NCBI GenBank assembly: GCA_964036045.1
Contig: OZ038378.1
Span: forward strand, 185,132,001-185,196,000
Length of the DNA stretch: 64,000 bases
Source: Eutreptiella sp. 'Long Island Sound 2002'
Taxonomy: Eukaryota > Protista > Euglenida
Direction: 5' to 3'
This document shows, one piece after another, positions 1-25,839 of the stretch (position 1 is the first letter of the stretch; each line of letters starts with the position of its first letter). The notes beneath the pieces are model-generated. The model searched no databases, was not told the DNA's origin, and saw nothing but the letters and a program-made list of their open reading frames with translations. Both the position numbers and the translations under genes were made by a program.

Positions 1-400
1 GATCCCAGCGCTTGCCAATGGGGGCAGCTGCCAAGGCAAGTAGGGCCATGGTGATCCCAGCGCTTGCCACAACGGGGGCAAAATGCCTTGGGGTTACAAC
101 GGGGGCAGAATGCCTTGGGGTTACATGTGCGGCATCTGTCTTGGCGTGTAGTGCCGTCGCCGCACGTACACAATTTGTGACCCCGTGATCCCGACTGTCG
201 CTGACGGGGGTACAGAACTGCTTCGTCAATGGCGGTTGCAGCGGAATCCTGTGCCCGGGCCCCTGCCACTGCCGCTGCCTTTGCTCCTCCGCCAGCCCGT
301 TGTGGTCGTGGTGGTAATGGAGGGCAATGGTGGGCAAAGCGGCACTCGGCTGCTGCTGCTGTTGCTGCTTTTCGCCTCAGGCTCGACCTACAAGTGAGTG
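1..400 (-). pseudogene. Possible gag-like remnant: Gln/Pro low-complexity stretch followed by a Cys-rich zinc-knuckle-like motif, running off the window edge
   Basis: The minus frame from about 232 to 1 reads ...DRCRTCNPKAFCPRCNPKAFCPRCGKRWDHHGPTCLGSCPHW (CX2CX5HX4C-like). It includes an in-frame 27-bp duplication (69-95/96-122). No start codon or intact context is visible. Confidence 0.3.
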
Positions 401-1302
401 GTGTCCTGTTTGCAGGTACTTGGGGCAGTTTGTCTGCTCTCTAGCAGAATCGCTTTTGTCCTTACGCAGCTCACTAGCGCACTTCGCATCCTATGGTTCT
501 GATGTCAGAACAACGTTGCTCTCAGTCATGAATTCTGTTCTCTAAAACACCATACGCACGGAAACCTTCTAGAGCACCTCGCCGGGCCGCCGTATTTCGT
601 TGTGGTTCATACATTGCTGCCCATACGCCGCACGTTGCTCCTGTCTTGGTGAAAGCAAATTTTCTAAATTGTAATAAGACCGGTCATCTACTCGTCAACT
701 TTTGCTTGTTCTTTAAATCTGGCGGTCTCATCCTTCAATTGTTTGATTAATATATGTTTCGGCAAACGCACAACGAGCAATGCACAGAGAAATTTAGATC
801 CATTCAGCACTTTTCGCGGTTCACAAAACACATCGTCTTATCCCTAAACAAAAGCACAACGAAAAATCCACGCATAAAAAGAAAGTACCTTTTTGCTCTA
901 CATTTTTTCTTCTCGGCTTCGCCGTCAGCCCTATGCTAGCATAATTGCATCTGTAAACCTGCAGCACCTGACTTCTGGCTGCTACTCTGCATTGGGTGCC
1001 CAACAAGACAACCAGCCAACCCAATCCCCAACCCTACGCCTTAGACCAATCGCTGGCAGGCCCCAGACGGCCGTCCCCGCCTGCTCAATGCCCCCAGTAG
1101 AGCCAAGGCCTCCGCAGCGTGCCACGACCGCCTAGGCAGGGTTCCCCAATAGCAGTGCTATCCCCAACCTGTGGCTCTGTAGGCACTGCGGCAGCCGCGG
1201 TACCAAGCCTGTGCCCATTGCAGACAAAATCCTATGTACCTACTGATGAAACTAAGACTGATCGACATGGCTAAAGGGGTCCCGGAGCTGCGTCATAGCA
1301 AC

Positions 1303-4300: not shown

Positions 4301-6572
4301 GGCAGTGGCTTTGTGCGGTTGTGGTGTGTGCTGCTGTTGTGTACAAGGTTTGCGTTATGGTGTTGCGGAATGTTGCGGAGTGGTGTTGCGCAGCAACGTT
4401 GGGTTTGTGATGACGATTTTGATCATTTAGAAGGATCGCACCCAGGGCGGCAATACCTTACAGCTGGTCCTAGAACTTATCGTCTTGTTGCCTTTACACT
4501 TCCAACAGCCGCTACCGCACCCGATCTTGCTGCCGCTGCAGCCAATCCTGCGCCTAAATGAGAGAAGCCAAAAGCCGTGATGGGGTAGGGAAGGGACCTT
4601 AAGAACCTTTGCTACCATAATTCAACGTCAATTCATAGTTTTGCAGAAAATGGATTAGACTCGGCCTTTCCGGCATTTTTGCTAATGACATGCGGGTCCC
4701 CATGCGGCGCCCCGTCGTAGTGCAGCATCACGCGTGGCGACTGAACTGGCCGGCTTGCAGGGGCCCATCCTTCCGCCGTGCCTTGCACGCCATCTCACAC
4801 AATTTTCTTTTCAATTTCTTGGTGGTTGCGCTCGGCTCTGCGCCTCCAGCGCCGCGGCGTCACCTGCGACCCCGTTCGCGTGAGCGTCGTCCTCCCGCGG
4901 CTGCCTTGTGCTATGGCTCCCGTGAACCATCAGAATCATCAAATCATCAATTAATTTCAGCTTGCCCAATTTGCCCATTAGGTGGAAAACGATGAAAAGC
5001 AAAAGCATGTAAGCGTATAGACAAGTAAACAATACTCTTCCTTGCCCCTCCTTCACTGCCAATCTGTTTCTCCCAATTTCCACCCTATGGGATGAATGCC
5101 ACACAAAAGATACACACCCCCAAATACAAAAAAACATCGCAACACAAAAAAACACACGCAACTCGCTAGCGGCTCTAGCTGAGGAACGCAGGCGGCTGGT
5201 GGCCGAGCCCAAAAGATCAATAACCAGACAAATCAAAATCTTGGAACCTCATTTCTACCGTGCTCATTGTTCATTCGTTACGCCGATGCTTTGAAGTAAT
5301 GCAAAGGAAAGAGACATGCTACAAAGGAAGAGAGCTGTCCCATACCATGCTATGCAACGGTGTTGCCTCGTCAACGGGACATGCCATATTTTGCATTTTC
5401 TTCATCGGCTACTTGCAATGCATTGTACTCCGAGGTATCCCCATGGTATGGGGCAAGGTGTTTCCATAACCTCGCGTTGGGTGATGGGACCCCCCATAAG
5501 GCATTGGTTGAGTAGCCACATTTCACATATTTGGGCCCCCTAAACGGCACCACTTCTAAATGTCTTGTAGACCAAGTGTAGCCTCCAACACAACACCCAG
5601 CATCAAATATCTCCCATGCGAGCCTTGTACAAAGCATGAATTTCAAATGGCTTTGGACCACCTTGGCGGTCGAGAAAATACCACGCCTTGCCATCCACCC
5701 GTGGGACCGCTTATAGTATCCCTTGCTGCATAAACCAGTCGGGATAGCCATTTATCTCATTGTACTCCTTGCATCCTTCCTTCCTGTTGCCCTGCACAAG
5801 CATTTGCACACTCCTTTGTAGCTGTGAGTTTTACAAGAAGCTCCCTATTGCAAAAGAGGGCAAGATATTTGGTGTTCTAAACAAAAGGTTTTCATGTTGG
5901 GGCAAGGGGTCCCTTGTTTTTTTATTTGCCTTGATTTCTTCTCATGGGAGATTCTTCCCGCGTTGCCTCGTGGGGACAGTCAAATATAGACCTAATTGCA
6001 CACACGGCGTTGTGTTACACATTTGTGGCACATATTCTCCCTCAGCCATTTTTCGCCGCCTGCTTCCGCTTACCATTGGTTTGGGTAGCTGAATAGCTCA
6101 GGTTTGGTTGTGCTGCGTAGCTTTCCTAGCCAACCGGGACGCATGCAATGAAGAATGGAAACCCAAATTAGAGGCACTTGCAACTGCAGATTATCGTTGG
6201 GCAGTGGCTTTGTCTAGCTGTGGTGTGTAGTGGTGTTGTGTACAAGTTTTGCGTTATGGTGTTGCGGAATGTTGCGGAGTGGTGTTGTGCAGGAACGTTG
6301 CGTGGTTGTTGTGTTGTTGTGTTGTGTAGAATGGGTTAGGGATGACGATTTTGATCATTCAGAAGGATTGCAGCCAGCGCGGCCGTACCTTGCAGCTGCT
6401 TTTGCAATGCACCGTATTGTTGCCTTTACACTTCCAACGGCCGCTACCGCACCCGATCGTGCTGCTGCTGCAGCCAATCCTGCGCCCGAATGAGAGAAGC
6501 CAAGAGCCGGGATGGGGTAGGGAAGGGACCTTAAGAACCTTTGCTATGATAATTGAATGTCAGTTCATAGTG
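1303..6572. repeat. Tandem array of a ~1.87-kb unit, 2.8 copies (1303-3175, 3176-5049, 5050-~6572)
   Basis: CCTTCACTGCCAAT..CTCCCAATTTCCACCCTATGGGA recurs at 1303, 3176 and 5050. Matching ORFs recur at the same offsets (1703/3502/5371, 2085/3959). Copy 3 is truncated and more diverged. Confidence 0.95.
2584..2680 (-). pseudogene. Decayed 97-nt coiled-coil exon inside the 1.87-kb unit (also at 4457-4553 and 6389-6485)
   Basis: It has a pyrimidine-rich acceptor (TCTCTCATTCAG) and a G|GTA donor, is 97 nt in all three copies, and reads AQDWLQRQQDRVE*RLLEV*RKQDDEF*DQL* with TAG/TAA stops. Confidence 0.55.
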
Positions 6573-8463
6573 TTGTATTGGTTTTTTTGTCACAAGAACC
6601 ATGCCAGCTTTGGCGCTCTAAAAAGGAGACAGCTATTATGATTAGTTCATGGCTAGGTGGTCACTAGGTTGAAACGCACGGATGGAGACCATCCGCTGAA
6701 AAGCACGGGGAGCACACACACTCATATGTCCTCAAGATGCCACGGCCGTTGTTGTCGTCTATGGTGTAACCGGAGAAGCGTCTCGCCTTGCTGACGCAGA
6801 AGTACCGCGACCGCGGGTGGTAATGTAGTGGACGCCTTGAGCCTACCATTGGTGCTACCCCTCCACGAGAACGATGGCTGTGGCGAAGCCTCCCGGCAAT
6901 GGCAGCGATGCGCTAGCTGTGCACGAGTAAGGCACCCCCGCCGCTCTTTGTGGATGCCATGCAAGAAGTTCTAGACAAACGGGGGTGGGAGAAGTTGAAG
7001 CATGCCAAGGTGGCGCAGCGGTTCTTGGAGCCTTCTCCATCTCCCTGCATAAGCACAGAATCCGTTAGCTACGGAAGCTCTCACAGCTGCTGAAGCCGTT
7101 GGACCGTGTCCGTACCATCACTCGTGTAGCCCGCGAGCAGAATACTCTACACGTGTTTGCGGTGGCACTCCATGGTGGTTCCATGGAGGGGGGAAAGGTT
7201 GACGGTGTGGTCGTCCTGAACTTGGCCAAAAATGCAACCACTTTGGCTTTTAGCGATTTGCTGCGGCAGTTAGGCGTGCCATGCAAGCGCCTAATGAGGG
7301 CGCAGGCGTTGGTCGCCAATTGTTTGTATTTGTCGATCCAAGTTGTGTTTGTTTTGCGCGGCATGGACCACCGCGTGTGGTTGACAATGAGGGCTGAGGA
7401 CTGTGCAGAGGTCCTACGGAATACACGGAACTGGTTTGCCACACTGCCGGGTAAACGGGGCTGAAAGTGGCACCGCAACACAGTAGATGCCCTGCAGGTC
7501 CTCGCCGCCCGCGGTGCTAATATGTATGTACCTCTTACCGTTGAGGGATTGGGTGGCGGTGCGGCCCTATTAAATGATGTTTGTGTATGTTGTAAGTTGT
7601 GCAATTTCTTGTGTTTTTTGGCAATGTATGCACGGGAAAAAGCCGCCATACCCTATATTATTTTTGTGTTGTCACATTGTGCAATTTTGTCAGGAAACAG
7701 ACATGGCAACACAAAAGAAGTTACACAACGAGATAGCAAAACAAAAAGCGTCATGACGCGATTGTGTTGCTTTGTACACAGCCCGACGGTGAAAAAAGAA
7801 AGTGAAGCGCGCTATTAATGAAAAACAATTACACACGCGGACAATAAAAATCAAACTACATGACCTAAGAGGAAAGGGGGAAAAAATGAAAAATATACGC
7901 TTGGAGTCGTCCCTTGAGTTGGCAATATGCAGCACCCCCTTCCTGGGAGGGTCTGCAAGACAGCAACCATCAAGTAGCCACTTTAATTTCCAACCCCCAT
8001 TGCTGGGAGCCCAATACGGCACTACCTCTACCCTTGAAAAGGGTGTTCTCATCGGCTTACTATGGTTGCACCATCCACATGTGCACGTTGCACCTATCGA
8101 TCATTATTGCTCCCCTTTTTCCACAACATCCTTTACTGCCATGGATAAGATATTCATGATGCTTCATATACAATCATGTCGAGAGCAATCATTGATGCAC
8201 CAATGCAAGGAGGTTTGGATTGTCCTTTCTTGCACAAATTGCGACGGTTGCACATCACGTGACAAAATGGAACCCGCTGCCTCTTTATTGCATCACCTGT
8301 CAACACCATTCTATGTCATTGATGAATGCCTTGCCAAGGACATTGGAGTTACCTCCTCATGGAAAGCCGCGAAGGCGTCGCACGACATCGTGGTGCTCTC
8401 GGAGCGCAGGTCATGGAACAGGACATCGAGCACTGTGATCTTCTTCAAACTGATCCCCGAGGT

Positions 8464-8864
8464 CTGGGCGGGAAGAAAATTGCTTTGCGGGGGGGGGTGG
8501 CACGGAAGCCCATTTGCCCAACCCCCCCCTCCCCCTCCTTGGTCGCCGTGCCGGGAGGGGGGTTTGGGCTGGGGCTGCCCTTCCTGCCGTGCCGGGGGGG
8601 GGGGGGGTCCGACCCCAACATACATGGCTCAAAATGATACCCACGTCGCGCTGATCATTTTGACTACACATATGTGGGGGAAAATTTTTGAGTGAAGAAA
8701 ATTTTCCGGGCCAAAATTTGTGTTCCGGCGCCTTTGGTGGCAACAACCGTCCTTACACAAAACAAAGGGCCCGGCACGGAAGCCCATTTCTGGAACCCCC
8801 CACCTCCTTCGCCGGGCGCCCATGCCATCCCCCCCCCCCGCAAAGCAATTTTCGGGCCGCCCTG
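8464..8864. mobile_element. MITE (~400 bp) with ~37-bp terminal inverted repeats, Tc1/mariner-like ends
   Basis: GGGCGGGAAGAAAATTGCTTTGCG(G)nTGGCA on the left is nearly the reverse complement of TGCCAT(C)nGCAAAGCAATTTTCGGGCCGCCC on the right. The right end is CTG|TA; the left flank is degraded. Confidence 0.7.
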
Positions 8865-10874: not shown

Positions 10875-11091
10875 CTTTTCGATCAAAGCTGCCACTACAG
10901 AGCACTCCACAGGATCCGCTGGGGTGACGGTCGAATCTACAGGCACCGCAAAGCTTTCCATAGGGCAACCCGGGGGCGTGTACTGCCTCAGCTGCTGGGG
11001 GCTGCCCTGAGTGTTCTGCAAGGAGAAGTCCACCAGCCGCGAACCTGGGACCCCTTCGGTGCTCACATCCTCAGTCACAAGCACTTGCCCT
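10875..11091 (-). CDS. Receptor-type cyclase-like gene, exon 8: end of the cyclase domain (GQVLVTED) and start of a possible second degenerate domain
   Basis: Acceptor TCTGCAG|A, donor AAG|GTACCC, 217 nt, phase 2 to 0. It joins exon 7 to give VAQG-GQVLVT, matching the trypanosome AC motif VANGGQVLMT. Confidence 0.75.
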
Positions 11092-13265
11092 CTGCAGATA
11101 TGGGACGGCGTGCATTTTGGCGATGACGGTCTCAACAGTTCAGAAGGATACTGCGGACCCTCTTACGACAAATTGACGCTCATGCTCAGGATCGCGCTTA
11201 CAGCAACACGGGGGGCGGCCATAATCCAATTCAAATCGGGTTCATGTGGAGTTGAACTTCTTACAGGAATCTTTTTGTCAAAATCCCTTCTTCCAAAAGC
11301 AACACTTTGTTTCTGAAACAGTAGCTTACCAAAAATACATTTTCACCAAATTTGTTTGTACCAAAATCAAAAATGATTGATTTTGGTACATGATGGGGAT
11401 TCTGGTAAAAAAAGGTAACACAATCACAGCAAGATTGATTTTCGGAAAAAGATTTCGATTCTGGCAACAGCTGAACAGTGGGTTGCAGCAATTATTGCGT
11501 CCAGTGCCTGGATCCTGCTGCCCAGTGCTGAGGCAGCAAAACGGAGCAAAACTGCGGCTCTGCCACCCCCCCCCCCCGCCGCCGCCCGCCAGGAGGGTTC
11601 AGTGAGCGGTGTAGCCCTCACAGTCCCGTCTCATCTCAGGTGGCCAAGGCGCGGCGGGCTCACCAGGGGGCTCCGCTCCCTTGAGTGCTCCTGCTCCAGC
11701 GCTTTTCATCCACCAGGACGCCCCCAGCCGGTCTAGCACTCTCTGCAGCGCCACCTGGGTCAGTCAAGGAGCACCACAAACCACATGTCCAGGCAGCGCC
11801 CCCTGCAGTGCTCAGGGGTTTTGTCGTGGGCAGAGGAAGCCCCAGGCCACACCCAACCCACAAACACCCCCAGCGGCTCGAATGTAGGGCTCCCCTGCCT
11901 CGTCGCTGGGGCCCGGAGCACCGGGCACACACAACCCCCCAACATGGCGGCACACAACTTGAAGAGCACACCAAGAACAGCACCTGCCATGACAGGCGCC
12001 GGGCCAGGTACCTTCCAGAAATACACCCTGCCCCCCCCCCCCTTCCCCCCCAGACGCACGCCGACAACACACAGGCAACACCCACACGGGCACGGCGGTA
12101 TCTCCCTCCCACCAGCGCCTCGGTGGGGTTCGGGGATCAACATTGAGACCAGACAACCGGAGGCTGAGGCCCAGTCGCGCCAACGAGGACACACAGGCAG
12201 TAAGGACGCACAGGCCGTGGACCCTCGCCTTCGGCGCAAGCTGAGACCCGACCCAACCCCCCTCCCGACTGCCGTTGTATTGCATAGTAACCGACCAGCG
12301 TGTAGAGGAGCAGCCTTCCCCAACAGAGATGCTCTTGCTGGGAATGGGCCTTGCGGGGGGGGCTTCAGTGGTTTCAAAAGCGGTTACCAGCAAGTGGAAA
12401 AGCGGTTGGGAGGCAATTGCTGGCGGGCGATGACCAGTTGGAGAGCCAACAGGGGCACAACTGGTTGGCAGGGCTGACTGTCACCCCAAAGAGAGGGTAG
12501 GTACGTCTCCCTCACTTCACGCAGAACCCCCCCCCCCCTGCACAGTTGGATTTGCCAATACTGGGGGTCGGGGGGGAGGGGTCAGGTGGCGACATTTTCG
12601 CGCGGGTAAAATTTTCGGCACCCGCACGTTGGTGCCTTTTGGACAATCAGTTGTGGGAAATGCCAGCGGACCCAAATTAGGGGGAACAGTGCATGTGAAC
12701 GAAGCAGCCATATGAGGGCAACAAACAGAAAAGCAAGGCCTAAGGTTGGCTCTCCATATTGAGGGGGGTGCTGACTCAAGGAATGGATGCGATGAGAGCG
12801 CCTCCTCTTTTTGATCACGCTGCTCTTCATATGAACCACGGTTCAGGGGGCGGGGGGGGGGGGGGGACTGGAATCGGACCCGATGTGACCACCCGAAACA
12901 CATGTTTCTCGAGACCCGGAGCGGGTGGGGGTGGGTGGGGGGCTGTGGGGCGCCTTGTAGGGGGCAGCCGCAGAGAAGGGGGCTGGTGTGGGCGGGATTG
13001 AGCCCGCAAAGGTCCACGGGGGGTTGGGTGGGGGTGTCGCGTACGACGACCGGACGCAGTCATCTCCACCCCCGGTACACGGGTTTTTGTCTTTGCTTGT
13101 GCCTTGAGGGCCCAGGGGGCAAAATGTGTCCCAAATTGCACAAATACGTTTGTGGGGAAACTCCGGCCCCGAAATTTCCCTTGCGAAATCGACCCCTGCC
13201 GAAGTCCCTCCCCCTCAAAGCCCCCCTCCCCTAACCCCCTGTACCTCACCACCGGCGGCACATAC

Positions 13266-13445
13266 CCCTGGGCCACGTCCGTCACCTGTGCCGCCACCTC
13301 CACCACCGCACCGGTGTAGTCATAGCGGTTGGTGCGGCGGTCCCGCACTATCCGGCCCCGCCCGCTGTGGATGCCAATGCTGAGACGGACGCTGGGCGGC
13401 TCGTTGGCCCTCTGCCTCCAGCTCAAGTCCTGCGTCCTGACAGAC
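13266..13445 (-). CDS. Receptor-type cyclase-like gene, exon 7: class III cyclase C-terminal half
   Basis: SVRLSIGIHSGRGRIVRDRRTNRYDYTGAVVEVAAQVTDVAQG aligns to GLRVRVGIHTG...YDYYGRTPNMAARTESVANG. Donor is GG|GTATGT. The acceptor is at 13445 or 13436; both are phase 2. Confidence 0.85.
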
Positions 13446-14224
13446 CTGTGCACATATGTACACACTGTGCCAGATGTATAGATATAGCGCATCGCCGCCA
13501 GCACAGGACACACACTTTTAGTGAGGGGGCACACGCATGATGCACACCTTTTGTGCATTGGAAACACGTGTGGTACATGAAAGCCAACAACAGAGGGAAA
13601 GATCTTGGCCATCCCCCACAAGGCAAATGCCATATCAACAAAGACTCAAAATCACTTGCTTCATTGTGTCCGGGAAAGAACCGCACGGGTCTGGGGGGCC
13701 AAACCACGTACCAAAGAAGAGAAGGCTGTGAGACGGCTGTGATACACACTCTTGAAAAATGGGGTCCAGCCCAATACAGCAATTGCGATTGTTGGATACA
13801 CTGACCCACACGTCTGCACTGTGCACCAGCATAGACATAGTGCATGCATGTGTACACTCTGCACAGTGTGCGATATGCATGTCAACAGCATGAACAGATT
13901 ACTGCGCCACCGACACGCAGGCATTGTGTGTGGTGTGGTGTGGTGTGGCGTTGTTGCCAAATGTCAACAGCCGGGATGGTCTTGCACACGGGAAAATGCA
14001 AGCCGGGAAGGCTGTGTGTCTAAACACGCACTGTGTGTAGTGTATTGCGTGCCTATGGCAGAGGGCTGTCACTCTCTCTGGTGCCGGGTGGCTGCTGTAG
14101 AAGACTGCCTTGGGGACACCCTACCGCTCTGCTTGATGGTGCAATCAAAGTTCTTGCTAGGCCTAGGCCTATGTGCCTGCGGGCCCTGGTCGGGCATTGA
14201 TGTGGCCGGCACTTGGGCAGCTAA

Positions 14225-14565
14225 GATCCTTCAGTACACTGCCACACTGCGATGGGCCGTGGGCAGTGAGAGTCCTTCAATATTCTGCCACACTACAATG
14301 GACAGCGGGCAATGGTGATCCTTCAGTACACTGCCACACTATATGGGGCAGTGGGCAGTGGGGATCCTTCAGTATACTACCGCACTGCACTGGACACTTG
14401 GCAACGGGGCTCCTCTTGTACACTGCCACACCGCAAGGGGCAATATGCAGTGGGTATCCTTCGGTATATTGCCACATTGCAAGGGGCATTGGGCAGTGGG
14501 GATCCTTCAATTCACTACTGCACTGCAGTGAATTCACTGCCGCACTGCAGCGGGCAGTGGGTACC
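14225..14565. repeat. 46-bp degenerate minisatellite, ~7 copies
   Basis: GATCCTTCAGTACACTGCCACACT...GGGCAGTGGG units start at 14225, 14271, 14317, 14363, 14409, 14455 and 14501. Confidence 0.9.
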
Positions 14566-14870
14566 ACTTCCCTGCTTTTCCAGTCGCCCCCTGAAAAACG
14601 TAATCTGAATCTATGATTACACAAAATTTACAGGGCCAAGCCGGAGACAACCGGAGAGCAGTTAAAACTGCTACCAACTCCACTGTGTTATTCGTTTGTC
14701 GTTCTCCGTCATCCAAATGAACTGAGACCCTGACCTTGGCTCCAACATGAGATGGGGGTGCATAGACCCCTACCCCCCCAATCCGTGGTATTTTTCGGGA
14801 CTTAGTGCGTTTTGAGGACCCATCTATGTATAATAAAAGGTAACCCTCAGACACCACATTTGCAATCTAC
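14560..14870 (-). mobile_element. RNase H (RNase HI-like) remnant of a retroelement, inside a cyclase-gene intron
   Basis: LYIDGS...GVGVY...QTNNTVELVAVLTAL...IIDSDYVFQGATGKAGKW contains the D, E and D RNase H motifs. No RT or complete element is visible. Confidence 0.8.
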
Positions 14871-15429
14871 GCCGACACCAACTGTACCACTTGGGGTTCT
14901 ACTTTCCTGCGCTTCGAACAAACATTCACTGCCTCCCCGTCCAAGTTATCCGGTCTCACAGAAGGGACTGCTGGGGGGCAAGCCCCTCGTCAACTTCTAG
15001 GGCAACACACCCAATTCTAGTAGCTGGCGTAGTGCCAATAGCAACACTACAGTTCGATCCACCACGGTGTGCTCTACCCGCAAATCTTAACCGGCCCAGT
15101 CCGCCCAAAGAGAGTATCCGGGGAAGGTCAGGGCAAGCGGTGGGTCTTCCCAGGGTTTCACCTCCGGCTTGTGACGGCACTTGGCTATGAGGGACGCAGC
15201 CTAGCATGACTCGTCATGTTGGCAAATACCAGCCACCACGTCACGTTGCTGTCACAAGGATACGCCCAGTTTTTACCCCAAGATTGGGCCACCCCAAGTT
15301 GTAGCCATCCTTAGGCCTGCCCCAGTTTTCCGTTGCCCCTGCAACAGCCAACAGGAGCCATCGCCACGGCGGCGGTAGGCATCCAATTGGAGGATGCCTA
15401 GTACCTCGGGTCTGGCTAGTGGTGTAATG

Positions 15430-15990
15430 CAGCACTGTGGCGCTCTGTGGGCTGTTTTGCCCCACGCTAGAGTGCCCTATGAACACATCTGCCCCACCTT
15501 GGGGCGCTTTGTGAATGTCTAAGTGTCCCACGACGGTGCACTCGGTGACTGTTGCTGCCCCACACTAGGGCAGTATGTGAACCTGTTTGTACCACGTTGG
15601 GGTGCTGTGTGACCGTCTCTACCCCATGTAGGGGCTGGGAACGTCTTTACCCCACGCTGGAGCGCTATGTGAACGTTGCTTGCCCCTCAATGGGGAGCTC
15701 TGTGAACGTCTCTACCCCAAGTTAGGGAGCACTGTAACAACCCTGTCCCACATTGGAGTGCTCTGTGAATGTCCTTGCTGCAAGATGGGGCACTCTGTGA
15801 ACGTTTTGTCCCACCCTGGGGTGCTTTGTGAACGCCTCTACCCCACATTGTGGCACTCTGTGAATGCCTCTACCCCACGTTGCGGTGCTCTGTGAGCGTC
15901 TCGGCCCCACTGTGGGCCACTCTGTGAACGTCTCTGCCCCATGTTGGGGCGTTCCACTGGCGCCTCCGCCCCTTGTTGGGGCACTCTGCG
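15430..15990. repeat. ~32-bp degenerate minisatellite, roughly 17 copies
   Basis: The consensus is about GGGGCACTCTGTGAACGTCTCTACCCCACGTT. The best-preserved consecutive 32-bp units lie at about 15815-15950. Confidence 0.85.
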
Positions 15991-16670
15991 GACGGCTCTG
16001 CCCCTTGCTAGGGCGCTTAGCGGGCGAGGCGGAGGGCCACCCCGCGGTGGTCTTTGGCTGCGCAATACCCCTGCACTGGGCATCGCGATGAGAGCAAATG
16101 AGCGCTGGGTGAAGCCCTCACCATGGCGCCTCGAAAGGTGGCCTATAGGATCACCGTGGTGAGGCCGCCCTGAGAGTCTATGGCGAAAGAAGGACGTGGA
16201 CCACAAGGGGAAGGCACATACGGCGAGCCACTCTCTGTCCCTGAGAACGAGAATGAGAACAGCGAGAACGGAGAGGGCACAACCGGGCACATGTCCGGGG
16301 AAGCACGTCACGAGGGGTGAGCCACATTGGCTCACAGAGGACGTCATGTGGCAGGCGTTTAACATGATGTAACACGAGGGGTTTTTCACGGGCCGGTGCC
16401 TGGCAATGTGTGTGGGCAAGCCGCCACACAGCTACCATCCTGAGGGTGTTAATACTGGGGCCAGGTCACCAGGGTGTAGTGTGGTGTGGTGTGGTGTGGC
16501 GTGGCATAGTGTGGTGTGATGTGGGGTGGGGTGGGGTGGGGTGGTACTGTGTGGGGTGGTTCTGGTATTGTATGAGAGCTTGTGGTGTGCTGTGGTGTAC
16601 AATGTGCTGGGGTGTGTTGCAGCGCGGAATGCTGTGTTGGGGTGTGTGGGGGGTCAGGCAGTGCATATAC

Positions 16671-17005
16671 CCTGCGGGGGAGACACCGAACGACCGGCGC
16701 GCCTCGTAGTGCTCATCGGGGACCCCCCGCGTGGAGCGCCCTGGGGACCCGCGGGGGGCCGCGTGCAGCCCAGGCCCGGCAGAGCGGGCACTGGCGCTCA
16801 TGCGCTCCAGCGACTGGCAGCTGCTTTTCGGGGTCAAGACAGTCTGGGCCTCAGTGAGCGGCAGCAGGGGGTTTGCAGCGCCGGGAGTGACCAGCGTCTG
16901 CCCCCAGTTCGCTGCCGCCGCCTGCTGCTGGATATTGCCTGCACACTGCAGGAGGCGCGCGGGGGATGCGGCGACGATGAGGAATGCATTCCCGATCTGC
17001 CGGGC
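16671..17005 (-). CDS. Receptor-type cyclase-like gene, exon 6: cyclase beta2-beta3 region plus a long insertion
   Basis: Acceptor TTCTTCTCAG|GCC, donor GG|GTATAT, 335 nt, phase 0 to 2. ARQIGNAFLIVAASPARLLQCAGNIQQQAAAANW aligns to VKTVGDSFMIASKSPFAAVQLAQELQLCFLHHDW. Confidence 0.85.
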
Positions 17006-18128
17006 CTGAGAAGAACATTTGAGGCAGAGGGAGACGTGTACATACGTATTCGTCACAACATGTCGATATGGCGGTAAAAAAATCGCGAATCTTTGGCTTC
17101 CGAATCGCGAAATTTGGTTCAATTTCGTGATTTTGTTGCGTGGTCACGGTTGTCCAATTGTATGGGCAGTACACGAATGCAGTGCAGTCTCCCAGAGGGG
17201 CAATTGGCCCCAATTGTACATCAATTCGGGTCGTTCGTGGGCTGACGGCGGACTGTAGCATGACACTCATGAAAAAACCCGGTCCTACCGCATACGTTTT
17301 GAACATCCTGAAGTTCCCCGCTAGGGGGCCTAAAAACCTGGTGATGCAGGGGGCACTTTGGGCCACCTAAGTCCCAGAGCCCAAGGTGCGCCACCGCCCT
17401 CCTCTGAACATGTTCCTCACCCCACCGTACTTCATGGGCCGCACGCAAACGGCTGAAGTTACTTGATCAAGTCTGATATGCCGCCCAAGAGCAGATGCAG
17501 CAGGAAAATCACACAGACGCAGCGCTGAACACAATCAGGCCGAACACTAGCAAAGCAGCGGTGTGTGCCACGACCACCAGCATTCTACATCTGAAGGGGG
17601 CACGGACGGAAAATTGCGGTTGTGTGACGGCAGTTGATGGATAACCTATTCTTGTGGGTTACCTGACAGCGGTTGCCAACAACACCAGTCGACCGACGCC
17701 TTCATAAGCCTCACTGGTGGCGGAGTCCAGCGGTTGTTTTTCTTCCTCAAGAAAATGCCGTCCTGTACGAATCGTCCGCAGCCCTATGCATGACGACCCT
17801 GCCAGTCTTTGACAAAAAAAAAACGCTGAATCCTCAAAGACCGTCCCCGGATCGAACTATGGAAACGCCCATATGGCCCGCCAATGGCCGGTGGCCAGCG
17901 AAAAGGCTGCCTGTAGCCCCCCCTGTACCGTGCCCTATAGCCCCCCTTTCGCGTGCCCTTTAGCCCCCCTTTCGCCCGCCCTACAGCCCCCCTTCGCTTG
18001 CCTATGCCAGCCAATGGCCTGCAGATAGTCTGCCGATGACCTGCCCATGGCACGCCCATAGCCAGCCACAGCCCTACCTATGGCGTTGCACATGGCATGC
18101 CATCCATTACAGTCCCCCCGACTCAGAC

Positions 18129-18391
18129 CTGGTAGCACTTGTGCTTCTGGACAGTGCGCGTTATCATGCGCGAAATGGCGACACTCACGCGGTGCATGGG
18201 CTCTTCGTACTGGGCCCAGAGGGCGTTCTCGTTCTTGAGGGACACGAACATGGCGAGAAACGGCTGTGTGGCATCCTTTGGGGCCTGGGCCGTCTGCATG
18301 CGTCGCTTGAAGAGGTACAGCAGAACGAGGGCTGAACCCAAGCCGACCAACAACAGCAGGCCGATGACCACCAACAGCAGGGGATCGGTGC
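18129..18391 (-). CDS. Receptor-type cyclase-like gene, exon 5: transmembrane helix and start of the cyclase domain
   Basis: Reads TDPLLLVVIGLLLLVGLGSALVLLYLFKRR (TM plus basic stop-transfer), then APKDATQPFLAMFVSLKNENALWAQ...KHKCYQ. Acceptor CCCTGTCCACCAG|GC, donor CAG|GTCTGAGT, phase 1 to 0. Confidence 0.85.
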
Positions 18392-18504
18392 CTGGTGGAC
18401 AGGGGCAGGCACACCAGTGGACTAGTTCGGTGCGGGCTGGCGTGGTGCTATCAAGACCCGTAACCTCCAAAGCCCAAAGCCTGATGCACCATGCTCTGTA
18501 GAAA

Positions 18505-20051
18505 CACACAACACAACACAACACAACACAACACATCACAACACAACACAACACAACACAACACAACACAACACAACACATTACAACACAACACAACACA
18601 ACACAACACAATACAACACAACACAACACATTACAACACAACACAACACAACACAACACAACACAACACAACACAACACAACACAACACAACACAACACA
18701 ACACAACACAACACAACACAACACAACACAACACAACACAACACAACACAACACAACACAACACAACACAACACAACACAACACAACACAACACAACACA
18801 AGCAACACGGTACTACACCAAACAGCACGACACGATGCGATACGATACGACACCACACAACACGACACAACACGACACAGCACAACACAATGCAATACAG
18901 CGCAACACAACACAGCACAACACAGCACAACACAAGCAAACGCAACACAACATAACACACAGCAACACAACACAACACAACGCAACGCAACACAACACAA
19001 CACAACACAACACAACACAACGCAACACAACACAACACAACACAACACAACACAATGCAATACAGCGCAACACAACACAACACAACACAACACAACACAA
19101 CACAACACAATACAACACAACACAACACAACACATTACAACACAACACAACACAACACAACACATCACAACACAACACAACACAACGCAACGCAACGCAA
19201 CGCAACACAACACAACACAACACAACACAACACAACGCAACACAACACAACACAACACAACACAACACATCACAACACAACACAACACAACACAACACAA
19301 CACAACACAACACAACACAACACAACACAACACAACACAACACAACACAACACAACACAACACAACACAACACAACACAACACAACACAACACAACACAA
19401 CACAACACAACACAACACAACACAACACAACACAACACAACACATCACATCACAACACAACACATCACAACACAACACAACACAACACAACACAACACAA
19501 CACAACGCAACACAACACAACACAACACAACACAACACAACACAACACAACACAACACAACACAACACAACACAACACAACACAACACAACACAACACAA
19601 TACAACACAACACAACACAACACATTACAACACAACACAACACAACACAACACATCACAACACAACACAACACAACACAACACAACACAACACAACACAA
19701 CACAACACAACACAACACAACACAACACAACACAACACAACACAACACAACACAACACAACACAACACAACACAATACAACACAACACAACACAACACAA
19801 CACAACACAACACAACACACAGCAGGGGTGTCGGAACACAGCACAACACAACACAACACAACACAACACAACACAACACAACACAACACAACACAACACA
19901 ATACAACACAACACAACACAACACAATACAACACAACACAATACAAAGCAACATAACATAACACACCGCAATGCAATGCAACACAACGCAACACAACACA
20001 GCACAAACACAACACAGCACAACACCACACAACACAATGCAATGCAACACA
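18505..20051. repeat. (CACAA)n pentanucleotide satellite, ~1.55 kb, filling a cyclase-gene intron
   Basis: Directly visible array with variant units (CACAT, TACAA, CGCAA). The long VVLCC/NTTQH ORFs in the track are translations of this repeat. Confidence 0.99.
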
Positions 20052-20052
20052 C

Positions 20053-20117
20053 CGACGGCGTCTGCATCCCCCACACAGTGCAAAGGGTCCGCAGTGGGGC
20101 CATCATTCGACAACACA
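20053..20117 (-). CDS. Receptor-type cyclase-like gene, exon 4 (65 nt, stalk)
   Basis: AAG|T GTG TTG ... GTC G|GTGTGT reads (C)VLSNDGPTADPLHCVGDADAV(G). Phase 2 to 1 fits both neighbours. An in-frame TAA immediately upstream fixes the acceptor. Confidence 0.5.
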
Positions 20118-21384
20118 CTTTAGGCATTAGGTGTTATGATGGAAGATGCTGTGCTGTAAAACACATCAAGGGTGCCACAGTAAGTTCCACTGCTCAGTAG
20201 CACAATGGTGTTGGAAGAAAATTGCAATGTTTGGACGTGGGACGTTCAATACTGTTGCCCTCACTCAGGCCTCTTGAGAATACTGGACGTGCACTCACTC
20301 GTGTGAAGGTAATTCACAGCGTCACGCACACAACACTGGGCAGCAAGCGCGGTGCTGACAGCACCCCCCCGCCCCAAAACAATAAGAACACGTGTTGCCA
20401 TAGAGGCACGCGCGCAAGACCCAGGGCTGTCCTTGGGGAATGAGGTGTTTCTTTTTTTCTTTCCCCTAAGGGCAGCCTGAGGTCTTGAGAGTGGCAGGAT
20501 TGCGGTGACGGCGGTTGGAGCTTAACCGTCGGTGGTTGATGGTCAACCGACGCCAGTTGGTCGGGAACCGACAGCACAGCGAGTGCAGGAACAAGCACGC
20601 ACTCTCGTCACTTGCAGGCACCCCCCCAAAAAAACACAAACCGGCCCTTTCCCAATCGCGCCGAATGAGGCAGAGGCGTGCCAGAGTCTGTCAGTGTTTT
20701 CTTTCTGCAGTAAGGACAGCCCTGGCAAGACCACTGCTGTGAACGGATGTCTGCATGGAGGTGTTTGCCGGCACTGGCCGGCGCGGTGTCGATGTACAAA
20801 AATCCTTGCTGCCGTGCTGGTGCCCACATGCAGAACACGTTGCTGCTGCCTAACCAATTGGAGCATACCTGAAATATCCAAACAAGAACGTATGCGCGAG
20901 TTCTTGAGGTGAATCGGCTTGGTAAGAAACATATGGCAACGGGGTTTTGACATTAAGGGTCAAACTTGGTTCGCCATGCATACCCATATGGGGCTGAATT
21001 GGCCCTGGGTTGCCAAGTGGCCGGCCCACTGGTCATGACCATTTTGTCCAATGTGCCACAAAGGCTGAGTAAGTCTGCCAGTTGGCACTTCCGGGTGTAT
21101 GCACTAGTCTGGGTTTTCAGGAGGAAATTGTGTACATTGTTTGTCCACTGGGGGAAAGTATTTTTAGCAGGTGAGAGTGGGAAAAATGTCCCTCTGCTCA
21201 CAAATGCTGCTTGTTTCACCACTGTTAGGGAAGTACTAAAGAGGGAATTTTCACAAACCATGAGGCAAATTCCAAACCTGACAAACAAGGGCTGAGTCAC
21301 GAAATGGGAGTAGATGTACCAGTTGGTACTTCTGGTGCTGGTGCACCTGGACATGGTTTGTGGGACTCCCCTTGGTAAAGGTAC

Positions 21385-21448
21385 CATTTCTGCCCCGTGG
21401 CGTCCCTCCCATGCCAGTGCCGGCAACGCCTCACACATTCAGTCCTCC
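21385..21448 (-). CDS. Receptor-type cyclase-like gene, exon 3 (64 nt, stalk)
   Basis: TAACAG|GG AGG ACT ... AAA TG|GTACC reads (G)RTECVRRCRHWHGRDATGQK(C). Phase 1 to 2 fits both neighbours. Confidence 0.5.
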
Positions 21449-21744
21449 CTGTTACAGTGAAGTTTGTTGGAGGGTGGCGCCCACCGCTGATGTGGGAAAT
21501 GTAATGCAGGGCCAGGGGGGCCCGGATCACCAAGTGTTGCCCATCAGTGCACAGCAGTGTCAAGCATTTTGCCGTACAGGGGGGCGGGGCTGTCTATCCT
21601 TTTGCAGTGTTCGGCCCCCATGGTGTCCACTTCCCTGCCACTTCCCTGCCAATGGTCACTCCCAACAGAGCAGAAGGGATCATTTTGAGGCATCATCAAT
21701 GCTTTTGCATGTCTTACTGTAGTTGCTAATGATTTTTTCGAAGG

Positions 21745-22110
21745 TTGTTCCTAGACCACTTGGGATGCTCCAACAACTTGTTTTCGCCTGTTGTGGCCCA
21801 TGGTGACCGGTTTTGGCCCCCAAAAGGTTTTAAAATGCTTGAAAATGGGCCATTCTGGGACCAAAACAGGGTCCAAAAGGGGTCAAAACCGCATTTTTCC
21901 CAAACTGATCTTGGACCCTTTGGGATGTTTTCACTCCACTTCGAGCCGGTGGTGACCAGTTTGGCCCCCCAAAATATCCCAAAGGGGCTTGTAAATGGAC
22001 CATCGGGACCAAATCAGGGTCCATAAGGGTTCAAACATGCACTTTTGCACAAGCGAACCTAGACCACTTGGGATGCTTGTGGAAGTATTTTTCGCCTATT
22101 CGGAGACCAC
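21745..22110. repeat. Degenerate ~150-bp unit repeat, ~2.5 copies
   Basis: The CTAGACCACTTGGGATG-like anchor recurs at about 21750, 21910 and 22059, followed by similar TTTTCGCC..GGTGACC..TTTGGCCCCC..AAATGG..GGGACCAAA blocks. Confidence 0.6.
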
Positions 22111-22693
22111 ATTCACCCTTTTCGGCCTTTTTGCCTCTGCCTTGACAGATCCTGGGCGTACCCGTTGCAGCCATCTCCACACTACTGTGCGGGGGATACA
22201 AACACAGGCACAGACAAGGACGGAGACCAGGGCATGGACAGGGTGTGCGGTTTGCTGTTTATGGGGTGCATCGTTCATGGTTTTTAGTGTGCAACGTTTC
22301 TGTCCCACCAACTTGGTCCCAATGTTCAGTCCTGGTTAGGCGTCAGCACTCGTTTGCATGCAAGTTCCCTTGGAACCGCCTTACATCCTGTCATCTCAGC
22401 AACATCTAATTGACATGCATGCATCATGAACATTGTTGTGGCAGGCTGCCACAGACATAATTCTCCTTCCGGCGCCTTTGGCGCCGATGGTGACGTCAGG
22501 CAAGAGCCCGGCTGAGCCCACTGACCTCTGGTAGCTAACTGTGGCCGGAGGGCAGGGAGAGGGAGTTCTGTATCCTTGGACCTGCAGACCCCCCCCCCCC
22601 CGCCCTTTCCACTCCTTCCGGGTTGCACCAAGTTGCCCCAATAGCTGGCGTACTTTGTGGGGTCTGGAGGGGAGGGTCTGGCCCTACATGTAC

Positions 22694-23029
22694 CTCCCCC
22701 GCATGCTTCAAGTGCCCCCGTGACAGAAACACAATCGAGGGGCGTTGTGCGAGGCCAGCACTGCACACCCGCAGAGCCAGCATAGGTCAGGTTGCAGCCG
22801 TTGTCAACAAACGTCACCACAGCCTCAGGCTCTGCACCGCCCACAAGGCGACTCAGGCGGTAGACCCTCATCTTCCGCACGCCCCAATTGCAGACAACGC
22901 AGCCTCCCATGGCGTTTGCGGCGGATGTGAGGCACGGCGGTTGTCCGTAAAGGGCCCCAGTAGGTCCGAGTAGATGGGAATATGCCGCGCCGCGTACCAA
23001 GCGTCAAGGATGCTGCTGTTGTCCGGGAC
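22694..23029 (-). CDS. Receptor-type cyclase-like gene, exon 2: end of the periplasmic-binding-protein-like ectodomain, with a 1-nt frameshift
   Basis: Acceptor CCCTGCAG|GTC, donor GGA G|GTACAT. VPDNSSILDAWYAARHIPIYSDLLGPFTD continues, after a frame change near 22943, as QPPCLTSAANAMGGCVVCNWGVRKMRVYRL (like the GPF..C..C.CNxGxR motif of euglenozoan receptor ACs). The exon is 336 nt where 337 is needed. Confidence 0.65.
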
Positions 23030-23413
23030 CTGCAGGGACATGTGGCGAAGCCACTAGTGGCGTTCCTCGCAGGCACCCGCACACCAGCCGTTGCAGAGCG
23101 TCTGATGTGTGGCCATTCACTTGGTTTAAGAGGGTCTGTGTAAAGAAAGTGCACCGCTTTCTGGGTGGTCCAGTATTTCGTTCTTGGCTCATGCTCAGGG
23201 GCTGGGAAGAAGATGCCATGATCAACTTGAAATCTCTGAACCAGAGTGTGACGTCGGCTGTGTACGTAAGGACTACGACCGTACAGGCTGCCATTACAGC
23301 ACCGAAGGTTGCCAGTGGGGGCGGGGGGGGGGGGATGCCGTAAAGGCTCACATAGTGTGCTGAGTGGTACTGTTGGGGGCAGACCCTGGCTTGAGTCTTG
23401 AGGAAATGGTCTA

Positions 23414-23597
23414 CCCCCCCCCTTGCGGGAACAACGGTAAAGTTCCAAAAGTTTTGGGGACAACACCTCCCATTGATAGGGGGGGGGAGGGGGGTTCTTC
23501 ACAAAGGGCAAAGGAGGACATGGTTCCAAAAGCTGCGGAAACTACCCCTGATGTTGTTCTGACAAGAGGTTGTTCTCACAAGGCGGGGGGGGGGGGG
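23414..23597. mobile_element. 184-bp MITE with TA flanks and poly-C/poly-G-ended TIRs
   Basis: TA|CCCCCCCCCTTGCGGGAAC ... GTTCTCACAAGGC(G)13|TA. Confidence 0.7.
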
Positions 23598-24059
23598 TAC
23601 GTTATCTGTCCAACGGCGGTGTGGAAACGTATTTTTGGTACTTGGGAATCGAACAGTTGTCCCTCTGCTTCTGCCCCTTGGGGTTCCTCCCACTCCGCAT
23701 GCTTCACGCGCTCAGTCATTCCCATGGCAGTGAATGTTACCCATCGCTCGTGCGAAGCATTTCAGGCAATTTGCCTTTTGGGGGGGGGGGGGATACGGGT
23801 GGCTTGGCACTGTCGTCCATGGCAGGGCCGCCCGGTCAGCTGTGTGGCAGTGGCCGTCGGAGGCCCGCCTTTGGTACCCGGCCACTACAAGCACGAAAGG
23901 GGGGTTGCAGTTCTGTGGTGCGTGTGTATCGACAGCATGTCGATCACCACATTCCTGACGGTGGAAGTAGGGTGTCCGCCATTGCTTGCGTTGCGCTGAG
24001 GGCTGCCGGCCTCCGGTGCCCTCGGACCTCAACAGAGCGCCAGCCGACGAGCAAATGCG

Positions 24060-24290
24060 GTCGGCCATCGGCCAACCGGCGTCCGGGTCTTGGGGGCATT
24101 TTTGAGCTCCCCGTTTCATTCGGCACATTTTGAATATACACAAGTCTGGGGGCACAATCCCCTTGTAGCCTTGACCACAAAAGGGGGGGGGGGGGACGGG
24201 GGGAAATCGGGAAAATGGGGGTGAAATTCTGCGCCCCGGTCCACAAAGGCCAACAAAATGGCCCGGGCGCCGCTGGGGCCTGTCGGTGGT
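24060..24290. repeat. Dispersed repeat, related copy at ~28215-28420
   Basis: Shared TTGGGGGCATTTT...GGGG(C/T)ACAATCCCC...GAAATTCTG(C/T)GCCCC(G/A)GTCCACA..GGC.AA.AAAAT.G.CCG.GCGCCGCT.GGGCC. Confidence 0.75.
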
Positions 24291-24918
24291 TCCTCGTCGT
24301 TCACCGTCGGTGTGGGTTGGGGGTCCGACACGTAAGCCCCCCCCTGTGGCCGTCTGCTTAGCGCCAACCTCCGTCGGTTGGCGGTTGGCCGAATCCTGCC
24401 ACTGATCACCGTCGGCCGTCCCCACTGGACGCAAGGTACAAAAAAAATCTGCTTCCTGAAGGGCAGCGCCGGATGGAACACTGGACTAGCCCCGTGCCGC
24501 AGACCGCGGAGGTGGGCCCCCACACAGTCACCCACGTCAAGCACCTCCTCAGCCCCTCGGCTGATGTATATCGTCTCGTAGTCAGGTCTTGTTCCCCATC
24601 AAGACAGCGGCGCTGTTCACAGTGTCCGTGTGCTCGGGGCCGCGGAACACATGATGGAGCGGGACTGCAGCAGGGCAAACGCGTTCTCGGACTGCAGGGG
24701 TGCTCAGTCCCGTTAGAGTCATTGCCCCCACCCCCGCCAGATGTGTGCAGCTCTTTGAGTAGTTCTGTGCCTCTTCGTCGTTCCGCGATTCCCTGACTCA
24801 TGACCTCTACATCTGGTGCTGCTTCTGCACCGTGGGTGCTGGGGGTGGAGCTGGCTGTACCAGGCAGCGAGGTGGCGTGAAAGCAAAGGCGCCGCCACCC
24901 GCAGGGCGCAGGGCATAC

Positions 24919-25839
24919 CAAGTTGTGACCCATCTGCTCCATCACATGCCCGAGGGCCACTTGCGCATAATAGCCCATCACCTGCATCGGATGCTGCAAG
25001 GCTTCGGGAAGGGGGGCCTCGGTGCTGCGATTGCCGTGCCAGTTCGGGATGCTCATCCCGAACACCACGTTCTCGAGGCCGGGGCAGCCGTGCGCCGCAA
25101 TGCAGTGCCGCGCCACCGCGTCCCAGTGCAGCGCCAAGTCCGCAAACGGCACGAAGAACGTCCAGGGGGAGCCACTGGCAAACGTCAGGAAGTCCATGAC
25201 CTCCTGCTCCGTCCGCAACCCGAACAGCAGCAGCTGCCCCGGCGCTTTGCCGTGCACCTGCGACCACTCCACCCACAAGTCGTCGCCGTACTCGAACACC
25301 GAAGCGACGGCCCCCCCGTGCTCCGCGGTCGCGCGCCGCACCTCCGCCGCGACGCCGGAACTCGAGAACCCGCCGGAACTGGCAGACTCGCCGCGCCGCC
25401 GATCCTCCGCGGGGGTCCGGGGAAGTGCGACGTGCGGCCGGACCGCCCCGGTTGTGTTCCCAAGGAACCGCAGCCAGGCCGCGATCTCCTGCTGCAGTGT
25501 GGGAAAGTTGCGGGGCATCGCCCGCTGGTGCCCGGCGAGGCCGCTCGGCGTCTGCAACGTGGCGAGTACGAGGAACGGGTAGTGGGCCTCCGGGACCGCG
25601 ATGCTGCCAACGAGCGCGCCAGCGTCGGCCACCCCCGCGGCCGCCTCCACCGCTGAAGAGCCGTTGACTGCGGCGTCGTAGCGCCCGGTGACGAGGGCGA
25701 GGGCAGGGTCCTCGCCGTCCGCGCTGTACCGGAGACCCGCGTTGAAGTGCCGCTCCCAAGACGCGGCGTTCGGGTGGCCGAGGGGCAGGAGCTGAACGAA
25801 GCGGAGGGGCTCGGAGTCGTCGTCGTCGTCGTTGTCCAT
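24919..25839 (-). CDS. Receptor-type cyclase-like gene, first recognisable exon: type-1 periplasmic-binding-protein-like ectodomain
   Basis: A GC-rich 921-nt frame. LRFVQLLPLGHPNAASWERHFNAGLRYSA...PTLQQEIAAWLRFL resembles the Leu-binding-like folds of trypanosomatid receptor ACs. Donor TTG|GTATGC is phase 0 and matches exon 2. There is no signal peptide, so an upstream exon may be hidden by a 1-nt deletion near the ATG. Confidence 0.7.

Follow-up and report, generated by a model that had tools for sequence, protein, structure and literature searches.

Gene layout at the locus

The window is a stretch of 64,000 nucleotides from the euglenid Eutreptiella sp. 'Long Island Sound 2002' (assembly GCA_964036045.1, contig OZ038378.1, positions 185,132,001 to 185,196,000), and on its minus strand lies a receptor-type adenylate cyclase homolog, called the window gene in the following. 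Homology searches and alignment agree with the initial annotation of this DNA that the gene has several exons and encodes a periplasmic-binding-protein-like (PBP-like) domain, a transmembrane (TM) helix and a class III cyclase-homology domain. Within the euglenozoan GRESAG4/ESAG4-type receptor adenylate cyclases, we propose to place the locus in an old branch that is catalytically dead. The DNA is GC-rich, and the same sequence is present on contig ctg10220 of the ENA assembly ERZ25074135. The sole differences between the window and this contig are one C in each of two long, intronic poly-C runs (at 8593 and 9759), and these mismatches are probably polishing differences. No paralog of the gene lies inside the 64-kb window.

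The exons appear as stop-free stretches with a GC content at third codon positions (GC3) of 0.8-0.9, or 0.67 for the last cyclase exon, and all are read from the minus strand. Exon 1 (25839-24919; 307 codons, GC3 0.89) encodes most of a membrane-proximal PBP or Venus-flytrap-like (VFT-like) domain of the PF25493 type and ends in phase 0 at the donor L/GTATGC at 24919, where the slash marks the exon border. The following acceptor, cag/GTCCC at 23029, opens exon 2 (23029-22769), which was placed by tblastn with the paralogs P0005, L004 and P0003; it encodes the end of the PBP-like domain, ILDAWY..LLGPF.. and then ..CVVCNWGVRKMRVYRL..CNLTY, with a frame change inside, and its likely donor is G/GTGTGC at 22769. 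The TM exon (18391-18129, with an alternative start at 18436) holds in one exon a hydrophobic stretch of ~24 residues, the sequence KRR and the beginning of the cyclase-homology domain (APKD..AMFVSLK..KCYQ); its C-rich acceptor, ..ccaccag/ at 18392, is the best one ahead of the TM helix. Cyclase-homology exon 2 (17005-16671) starts with ARQIGNAF and contains a long low-complexity insert, which occupies the position of the trypanosomal delta-subdomain. Cyclase-homology exon 3 (13445-13266) encodes SIGIHSG, RYDYTG and VVEVAAQ, and cyclase-homology exon 4 (11091-10875) encodes (G)GQVLV..LRQYTPPG..AALIEK and ends at a GT donor. An extra 3' exon (8463-8353; GC3 ~0.84), reading TSGISLKKITVLDVLF..DAFAAFHEE, was recovered at E 1e-6 by hmmsearch with a profile of a C-terminal domain known from relatives, and is also matched by tblastn with P0003 and P0007; its borders, cag/ and /GTAACT, are both in phase 0, and if the donor is not used, a stop follows 13 codons on. 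A weak match at 7652-7515 was rejected as an exon, on account of its E of 4-12 and its low GC3.

Four junctions are of the GT-AG type and residue-exact with the homolog alignment: KCYQ/gt (18129) to cag/ARQIGNAF (17005), SPAG plus 2 nt/gtatat (16671) to cag/G-SVRT (13445), VAQ plus 2 nt/gtatgt (13266) to cag/(G)GQVLV (11091), and IEK/gtacc (10875) to cag/TSGISLKK (8463). Since position 10,875 is the donor of the last of these, the gene does not end there. The eight exons of the initial annotation, given with mutually compatible phases, therefore stopped short at the 3' end, where exon 8463-8353 has now been added, and they began without a signal peptide or a first PBP domain. The phases at the ends of that model are retained (0 for exon 1, 0 for the TM exon, then 2, 2 and 0), and those of its middle (1, 2, 1) are not. 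Its Cys stalk and fourth exon are not retained either, as ~12 residues separate C-x-L-x-Y from the TM helix in the paralogs, and codon bias falls in that region.

Several introns contain repeats. The intron upstream of the TM exon holds a 1.5-kb (ACACA)n microsatellite (18506-20037, ~306 copies), in which long CCVVL/TTQHN 'ORFs' can be read in frame but are not genes. The intronic stretches at 21060-22020 and 23364-24323 are very high-copy repeats, and contigs of the DNA runs cover them 40 to several thousand times as deeply as the single-copy exons.

A cyclase-homology domain without its catalytic residues

Homology was scored exon by exon, with single exons as queries. In these searches the TM exon matched PDB entry 1fx2 at E 5.7e-5 and the exon carrying GIHSG matched it at E 0.028, the best solved relatives of both being Trypanosoma brucei GRESAG4.1 and GRESAG4.3. 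At the level of Pfam profiles the domain assignments were borne out in part, as Guanylate_cyc (PF00211) recognised the GIHSG exon only, at E 0.018 and under its gathering score, and exon 1 had no direct Pfam match. In the alignment, all four cyclase-homology exons are collinear with active and with dead relatives.

The catalytic positions were read against three active relatives, i.e. Euglena gracilis EG_transcript_310 (P0002), P0006 and a paralog from the same genome in L003. The first metal-binding Asp, which lies in FTDI in the active relatives, is Ser in the window gene (FVSL, in the TM exon), and the second, in GDSF, is Asn (GNAF, in cyclase-homology exon 2). The transition-state Asn and Arg of the NxAAR motif are Glu and Gln (EVAAQ, in cyclase-homology exon 3), and the adenine-specifying Lys is Arg (YQ/ARQIG, at the start of cyclase-homology exon 2). 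The adenine-specifying Asp of YDY is present, as are GIHSG and GGQVL. The alignments thus agree with what had been noted earlier, namely the changes from FTDI to FVSL, from GDSF to GNAF and from NxAAR to EVAAQ, and the retention of GIHSG, YDY and GGQVL. They support the view that the window gene encodes a GRESAG4-type receptor cyclase homolog that would be unable to use the canonical two-metal mechanism.

A clade of dead receptor cyclases

The window gene is not alone in this loss. Two paralogs from the same assembly (ERZ25074135), L001 (protein P0003) and L004, carry FVSM, GSAF and VVRAAI, and FVTL, GNST and VVNGAAS, respectively, at the corresponding positions. Further members come from the ENA assembly ERZ21831265 (P0007 and P0010-P0014), in which five genes (P0007, P0010 and P0012-P0014) are intronless, encode 1,365-1,381 residues, and read FVSL or FVTL, GSAM or GAAV, and CVDGAAVV; P0011 runs off the contig end and is seen partially. 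The members share the derived characters MFV[ST][LM] and VG[SAN]A, the loss of the Asn and Arg, a 2-residue deletion and QF/YxPPG. In a maximum-likelihood tree of 12 rows with long branches, for which exon fragments were merged column by column in a script, the split between dead and active members is supported at 100/100 and the window gene stands beside L001 at 91/91. The end branch of the window gene is the shortest of the three dead members from the same genome.

The intact members of the clade possess a signal peptide, two VFT ectodomains, one TM helix, the dead cyclase-homology domain and a conserved C-terminal domain. The latter begins with TSG..KKI.VL, and the active members are without it. 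For the intact tandem genes P0007 and P0010 (1,375 and 1,380 residues), dN/dS is 0.29 overall and 0.20 in the dead domain together with the C-terminal part, which indicates that in at least one organism selection maintains the clade. The expectation that a functional pseudoenzyme would evolve under constraint thus holds for intact relatives of the window gene (0.20-0.29), the estimate being that of the P0007/P0010 pair. As judged from the aligned sequences, the substitutions are an old and selected dead state of the clade, not random decay. This clade of non-catalytic receptor cyclases is so far undescribed.

An alternative explanation is that the protein is an active cyclase or another nucleotide-handling enzyme with non-canonical residues, in which Ser and Asn bind the metal and Glu and Gln stabilise the transition state. 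The purine-contacting Asp of YDY is indeed kept and the change from Lys to Arg is conservative. However, throughout the clade the two metal Asp are lost, as are the two transition-state residues, and the replacements vary from member to member (S/T, S/A/N, D/V/E/N and V/A/I/Q/S), which points to relaxed identity at the catalytic positions rather than to a new catalytic set. Furthermore, an engineered T. brucei ESAG4 in which one metal Asp and the transition-state Arg were replaced is a dominant negative (reviewed in PMC6027212). We consider such an enzyme to be very improbable.

The C-terminal domain of the clade (P0007:1090-1375 and relatives) comprises ~280 residues with the motif GIAxGK...G..PExALRLE, and is without both metal Asp. 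Its predicted order of strands and helices weakly resembles that of a class III cyclase domain. As leads only, a comparison with PDB profiles gave OaPAC at E 0.07 on the GxxxG...AxRLE motif, and the neighbours of the domain in a protein atlas include Guanylate_cyc. An hhalign comparison of this domain with the first cyclase domain was negative, and Pfam gave no match to it. Its AlphaFold model had a pLDDT of 44.

The genomic settings of the relatives differ. At L005:7412-21539 (ERZ21831265), three dead-clade genes lie head to tail, two of them complete (1,375 and 1,380 residues) and the third running off the contig end; this organism is apparently intron-poor, and an active family member is found on another of its contigs (L006). 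The same-genome paralog at L001:7170-13009 is intronless, has one in-frame stop in the C-terminal domain, a repeat-filled gap in place of the first half of the second PBP domain and the longest branch of the tree, and is followed downstream by LINE-like ORFs (Exo_endo_phos, RVT_1, RNase_H); possibly it is a pseudogene that arose by retro-copying. When exon 1, P0003 and P0007 served as queries, word-index protein searches returned only the queries themselves or close copies.

The ectodomain and the missing 5' part

An exhaustive HMMER search with exon 1 matched eight proteins, the best being P0002 (EG_transcript_310) at E 1.7e-16 over residues 424-706. Pfam assigns these residues to PF25493 (Peripla_BP_A-cyclase), the second, membrane-proximal PBP-like domain of receptor cyclases, and P0002, P0006 and P0007 possess in addition an N-terminal Peripla_BP_6 domain. 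Exon 1 therefore represents the second of two Venus-flytrap domains; its protein-atlas features point to Peripla_BP_6/ANF_receptor. The first PBP domain (PBP1) was not matched anywhere in the 64-kb window by tblastn with five PBP1 queries. An unrelated RimK-type gene lies upstream of exon 1 on the same strand, 5.5 kb away, and local alignment of the intervening 5.5 kb to PBP1 remained at noise level. An in-frame TGA stands two codons ahead of the exon 1 ATG. A signal peptide was not found either, the scan of the 5.5 kb upstream giving weak candidates only; in L004, a paralog from the same genome, signal peptide and PBP1 are both present.

A frame break in exon 2

Near 22,940, within exon 2, the coding signal given by GC3 moves from one reading frame to another. 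From this switch and from the paralog alignment, the site can be delimited to 22904-22950 on the minus strand, with the break around 22938-22943. DNA contigs of two runs, X2 and X4, match the window at this site (X2, X4 and X5 are DNA of the same organism). The agreement of the two runs, together with the fact that window and ENA contig differ only in intronic poly-C lengths, indicates that the break is real in the DNA.

Three readings fit the break: the loss of 1 nt or gain of 2 nt, a 32-nt GT-AG gap at 22935-22904, or a 35-nt stretch at 22950-22916. The paralog P0005 aligns straight across it (GPYSDTPC versus GPFTDN/PPC), which is the pattern of a frameshift of the first kind, and both frames carry coding signal around the 32-nt gap. 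Removal of either 32 or 35 nt gives loop lengths like those of the paralogs P0003 and L004, and the 35-nt stretch matches the signature of euglenid nonconventional introns, N3-CDG...CH'G-N6/R (PMC12501133). In E. gracilis, the shortest catalogued GT-AG introns measure 41 nt, and the shortest nonconventional ones 30-36 nt (PMC11170887). The junction between exons 2 and 3 of the initial annotation was this 32-nt GT-AG gap, and could not be confirmed, being below the 41-nt minimum and aligned across by P0005.

Displaced 3' exons

In place, the C-terminal domain is limited to its first exon (8463-8353); neither the window nor the 22.7 kb adjoining the window start contains the remainder, which is thus absent for 31 kb downstream. 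A tandem array of ~3.3-kb units, 88-98% alike and ~18 kb in total, starts 1.8 kb downstream of the last in-place exon; it occupies window positions 1-6575 and continues to ~11.6 kb beyond the window start (L007, L008), and lies between this exon and a displaced set of 3' exons. These are found on the same contig at L010:14244-17688 (24.6-28 kb beyond the window start), where three open, codon-biased pieces of the C-terminal domain have GC3 values of 0.68-0.84. With + denoting the strand of the window gene in L010, they are E10a (17405-17581, +), E11 (16444-16151, -) and E12 (14621-14244, -), the last of which carries the DEWMYELE motif of the clade and the C-terminus. E10a is flanked by 79-nt inverted repeats (17125-17203 and 17610-17688, 90% complementary), and the small segment between them may be able to flip. 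The E11-E12 intron holds a pair of 413-nt inverted repeats (14852-15264 and 15499-15911, 98% complementary). A further 21.6 kb beyond the three exons contains unrelated genes and no other family exon, and a convergent paralog as the owner of the distant exons was rejected on this ground. Most simply, E10a, E11 and E12 are the window gene's own tail, inverted ~35 kb away from the in-place exon and scrambled by one large and one small inversion. No single strand in the assembled order can yield a complete C-terminal domain.

These observations bear on the suggestion that an intact full-length gene is hidden by the assembly, with a 3' block that is in truth collinear but mis-oriented and 5' exons beyond the searched range. 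The open state and GC3 of E10a, E11 and E12, the lack of another 5' partner for them within 21.6 kb, and the long repeat arrays, which are classic sites of mis-joins, all speak for it. A large mis-join, however, cannot explain why E10a faces the opposite way to E11 and E12 within ~1 kb, and window and ENA contig agree save for the two poly-C lengths. The 38 kb upstream, in which an unrelated gene lies on the same strand, contain no PBP1, and an intact gene would need an intron of ~33 kb, compared with ~8 kb for the longest intron catalogued in E. gracilis (PMC11170887). An intact gene of this kind therefore seems improbable to us, if less so than an active enzyme.

Possible traces of transcription

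Reads and contigs were compared with window positions 20100-25839. Only one RNA run contains any of this stretch, an estuary metatranscriptome with two contigs that are 100% identical to exon 1 (24917-25170 and 25683-25839), so that the window organism or a very close strain occurs in the estuary sample. Other matches of the run fall in the repeat introns, at 90-95% identity. Coverage of exon 1 by these contigs is thin, and DNA carry-over may still account for them. One contig leaves the genome 2 nt past the exon 1 donor, with five loose letters, as would fit a transcript spliced to an exon that starts with GT. For the junctions of the initial annotation, this contig gives a hint at the exon 1 donor, the comparison being limited to 20100-25839. 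No transcript-derived protein of the gene was present in either protein collection searched.

A disabled copy or a shortened receptor

The missing 5' part, the frame break and the scrambled 3' end together make a truncated or disabled copy more likely than a working receptor. We therefore favour, with a probability of roughly 60%, the explanation that the window copy is a truncated or recently disabled member of the dead clade, possibly still transcribed, whose loss of function we infer from these three structural defects. The earlier idea of an inactive pseudo-cyclase receptor accordingly fits the family, with its shared substitutions and purifying selection, better than it fits this copy.

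Several observations weigh against a disabled copy. Seven exons are open with strong codon bias, the motifs conserved in the clade are all retained and six GT-AG junctions are intact; together with the short end branch, the open exons imply that any disabling was recent. A short signal-peptide exon escapes homology search. The 32-nt GT-AG gap or the 35-nt stretch of nonconventional type could rescue the frame, and introns of 30-36 nt have been recorded in euglenids (PMC11170887). The RNA contig that departs 2 nt past the exon 1 donor belongs here as well, and the orientation of the distant 3' block is that of one assembly across an 18-kb repeat array.

On these observations, the gene could instead be a working, shortened pseudo-cyclase receptor of ~750-765 residues with a single VFT domain, the TM helix and the dead domain, ending soon after exon 8463-8353. 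Such a protein would take its start from a small undetected signal-peptide exon, or from spliced-leader addition combined with another targeting route, and a 32-35-nt intron would remove the frame break. Besides the open exons with their strong GC3, retained motifs and short branch, the start of exon 1 at exactly the PF25493 domain boundary is in its favour, as are the RNA-library contigs in exon 1, one of which stops at the donor. Very short euglenid introns exist, the 35-nt candidate fits N3-CDG...CH'G-N6/R, and the loop lengths after removal of either stretch occur in P0003 and L004. Against this, the signal-peptide search produced weak candidates only, 32 nt is less than the smallest catalogued GT-AG intron (41 nt) and P0005 aligns through the supposed intron. 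The C-terminal domain of the clade would be cut after its first 37 residues, and a transcript-derived protein was not found in the collections searched. A shortened receptor is thus unlikely in our judgement, although it is the most probable of the alternatives.

Proposed role of the dead clade

The catalytic sites of class III cyclases form across the dimer interface. An intact dead member would thus be expected to produce no cAMP as a homodimer and, with the Asp pair and the Asn and Arg all lost, would kill both sites in a heterodimer with an active paralog. Members of the dead clade might therefore bind ligands and, without catalysis of their own, pair with active cyclases or restrain them, or else serve as scaffolds. 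For the dominant-negative or regulatory role suggested in the initial annotation, the engineered ESAG4 (PMC6027212) provides an experimental precedent, and such a role is doubtful for the window copy as a working receptor.

Taking a wider view, we tentatively put forward, and regard as open to considerable doubt, that Euglenozoa keep an old, undescribed clade of receptor 'cyclases' that have lost all catalytic residues, remain under purifying selection and carry a second, strongly degenerate cyclase-like domain, and that sense ligands and, as non-catalytic partners, tune active cyclases through dead heterodimers, the window copy being possibly a shortened member. If this is true, the proteins of the dead clade are a natural version of the laboratory dominant-negative ESAG4. 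To our knowledge, neither the signals sensed by the large receptor adenylate cyclase families of trypanosomes and their relatives nor the way in which these enzymes are switched has been established. A conserved branch that is dead by nature would act as a regulator built into the family, and would give a handle on the dimer control of these enzymes. It would also add a class of pseudoenzymes, the pseudo-cyclases, beside the better known pseudokinases. For annotation, the locus illustrates that a convincing euglenid domain model may represent a fragment whose ends are missing, whose exons are inverted and whose frame breaks are perhaps tiny introns, and that the loss of catalytic residues alone cannot tell a decaying gene from a selected pseudoenzyme.

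Comparison with known systems

The closest known counterparts are T. brucei GRESAG4.1, GRESAG4.3 and ESAG4 (PDB 1fx2 and 1fx4), which have a like layout, i.e. a VFT-type ectodomain, a single TM helix and a class III domain directly after it, and likewise an insert at the position of the delta-subdomain. In contrast to these cyclases, the window gene has both metal Asp, the Asn, the Arg and the Lys replaced, possesses GT-AG introns, and retains the second VFT domain only, with no signal peptide found; the dead clade differs from them further by its extra conserved C-terminal domain. The P0007-type genes belong to the same clade as the window copy and share its motifs and the start of its C-terminal domain. 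They are intronless, complete and under purifying selection, whereas the window copy is without both ends.

In Leishmania donovani, Sanchez et al. in 1995 reportedly found that RAC-B is inactive alone and lowers the activity of its active neighbour RAC-A. RAC-B is said to keep its catalytic residues, unlike the dead clade.

In the engineered dominant-negative ESAG4 the same kind of residues are gone, so that by analogy a dead paralog occurring in nature should likewise poison the heterodimers that it enters. The engineered protein was made from an active enzyme in the laboratory, whereas the dead clade is natural and old, and its loss is clade-wide and more complete. Mammalian transmembrane adenylyl cyclases, with their C1 and C2 domains, and soluble guanylate cyclase likewise retain a residue-depleted cyclase-homology domain as a dimer partner. 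Their halves, however, keep complementary sets of residues, which together make one working site, whereas the dead domain described here is without both sets and would thus form no working site with any partner.

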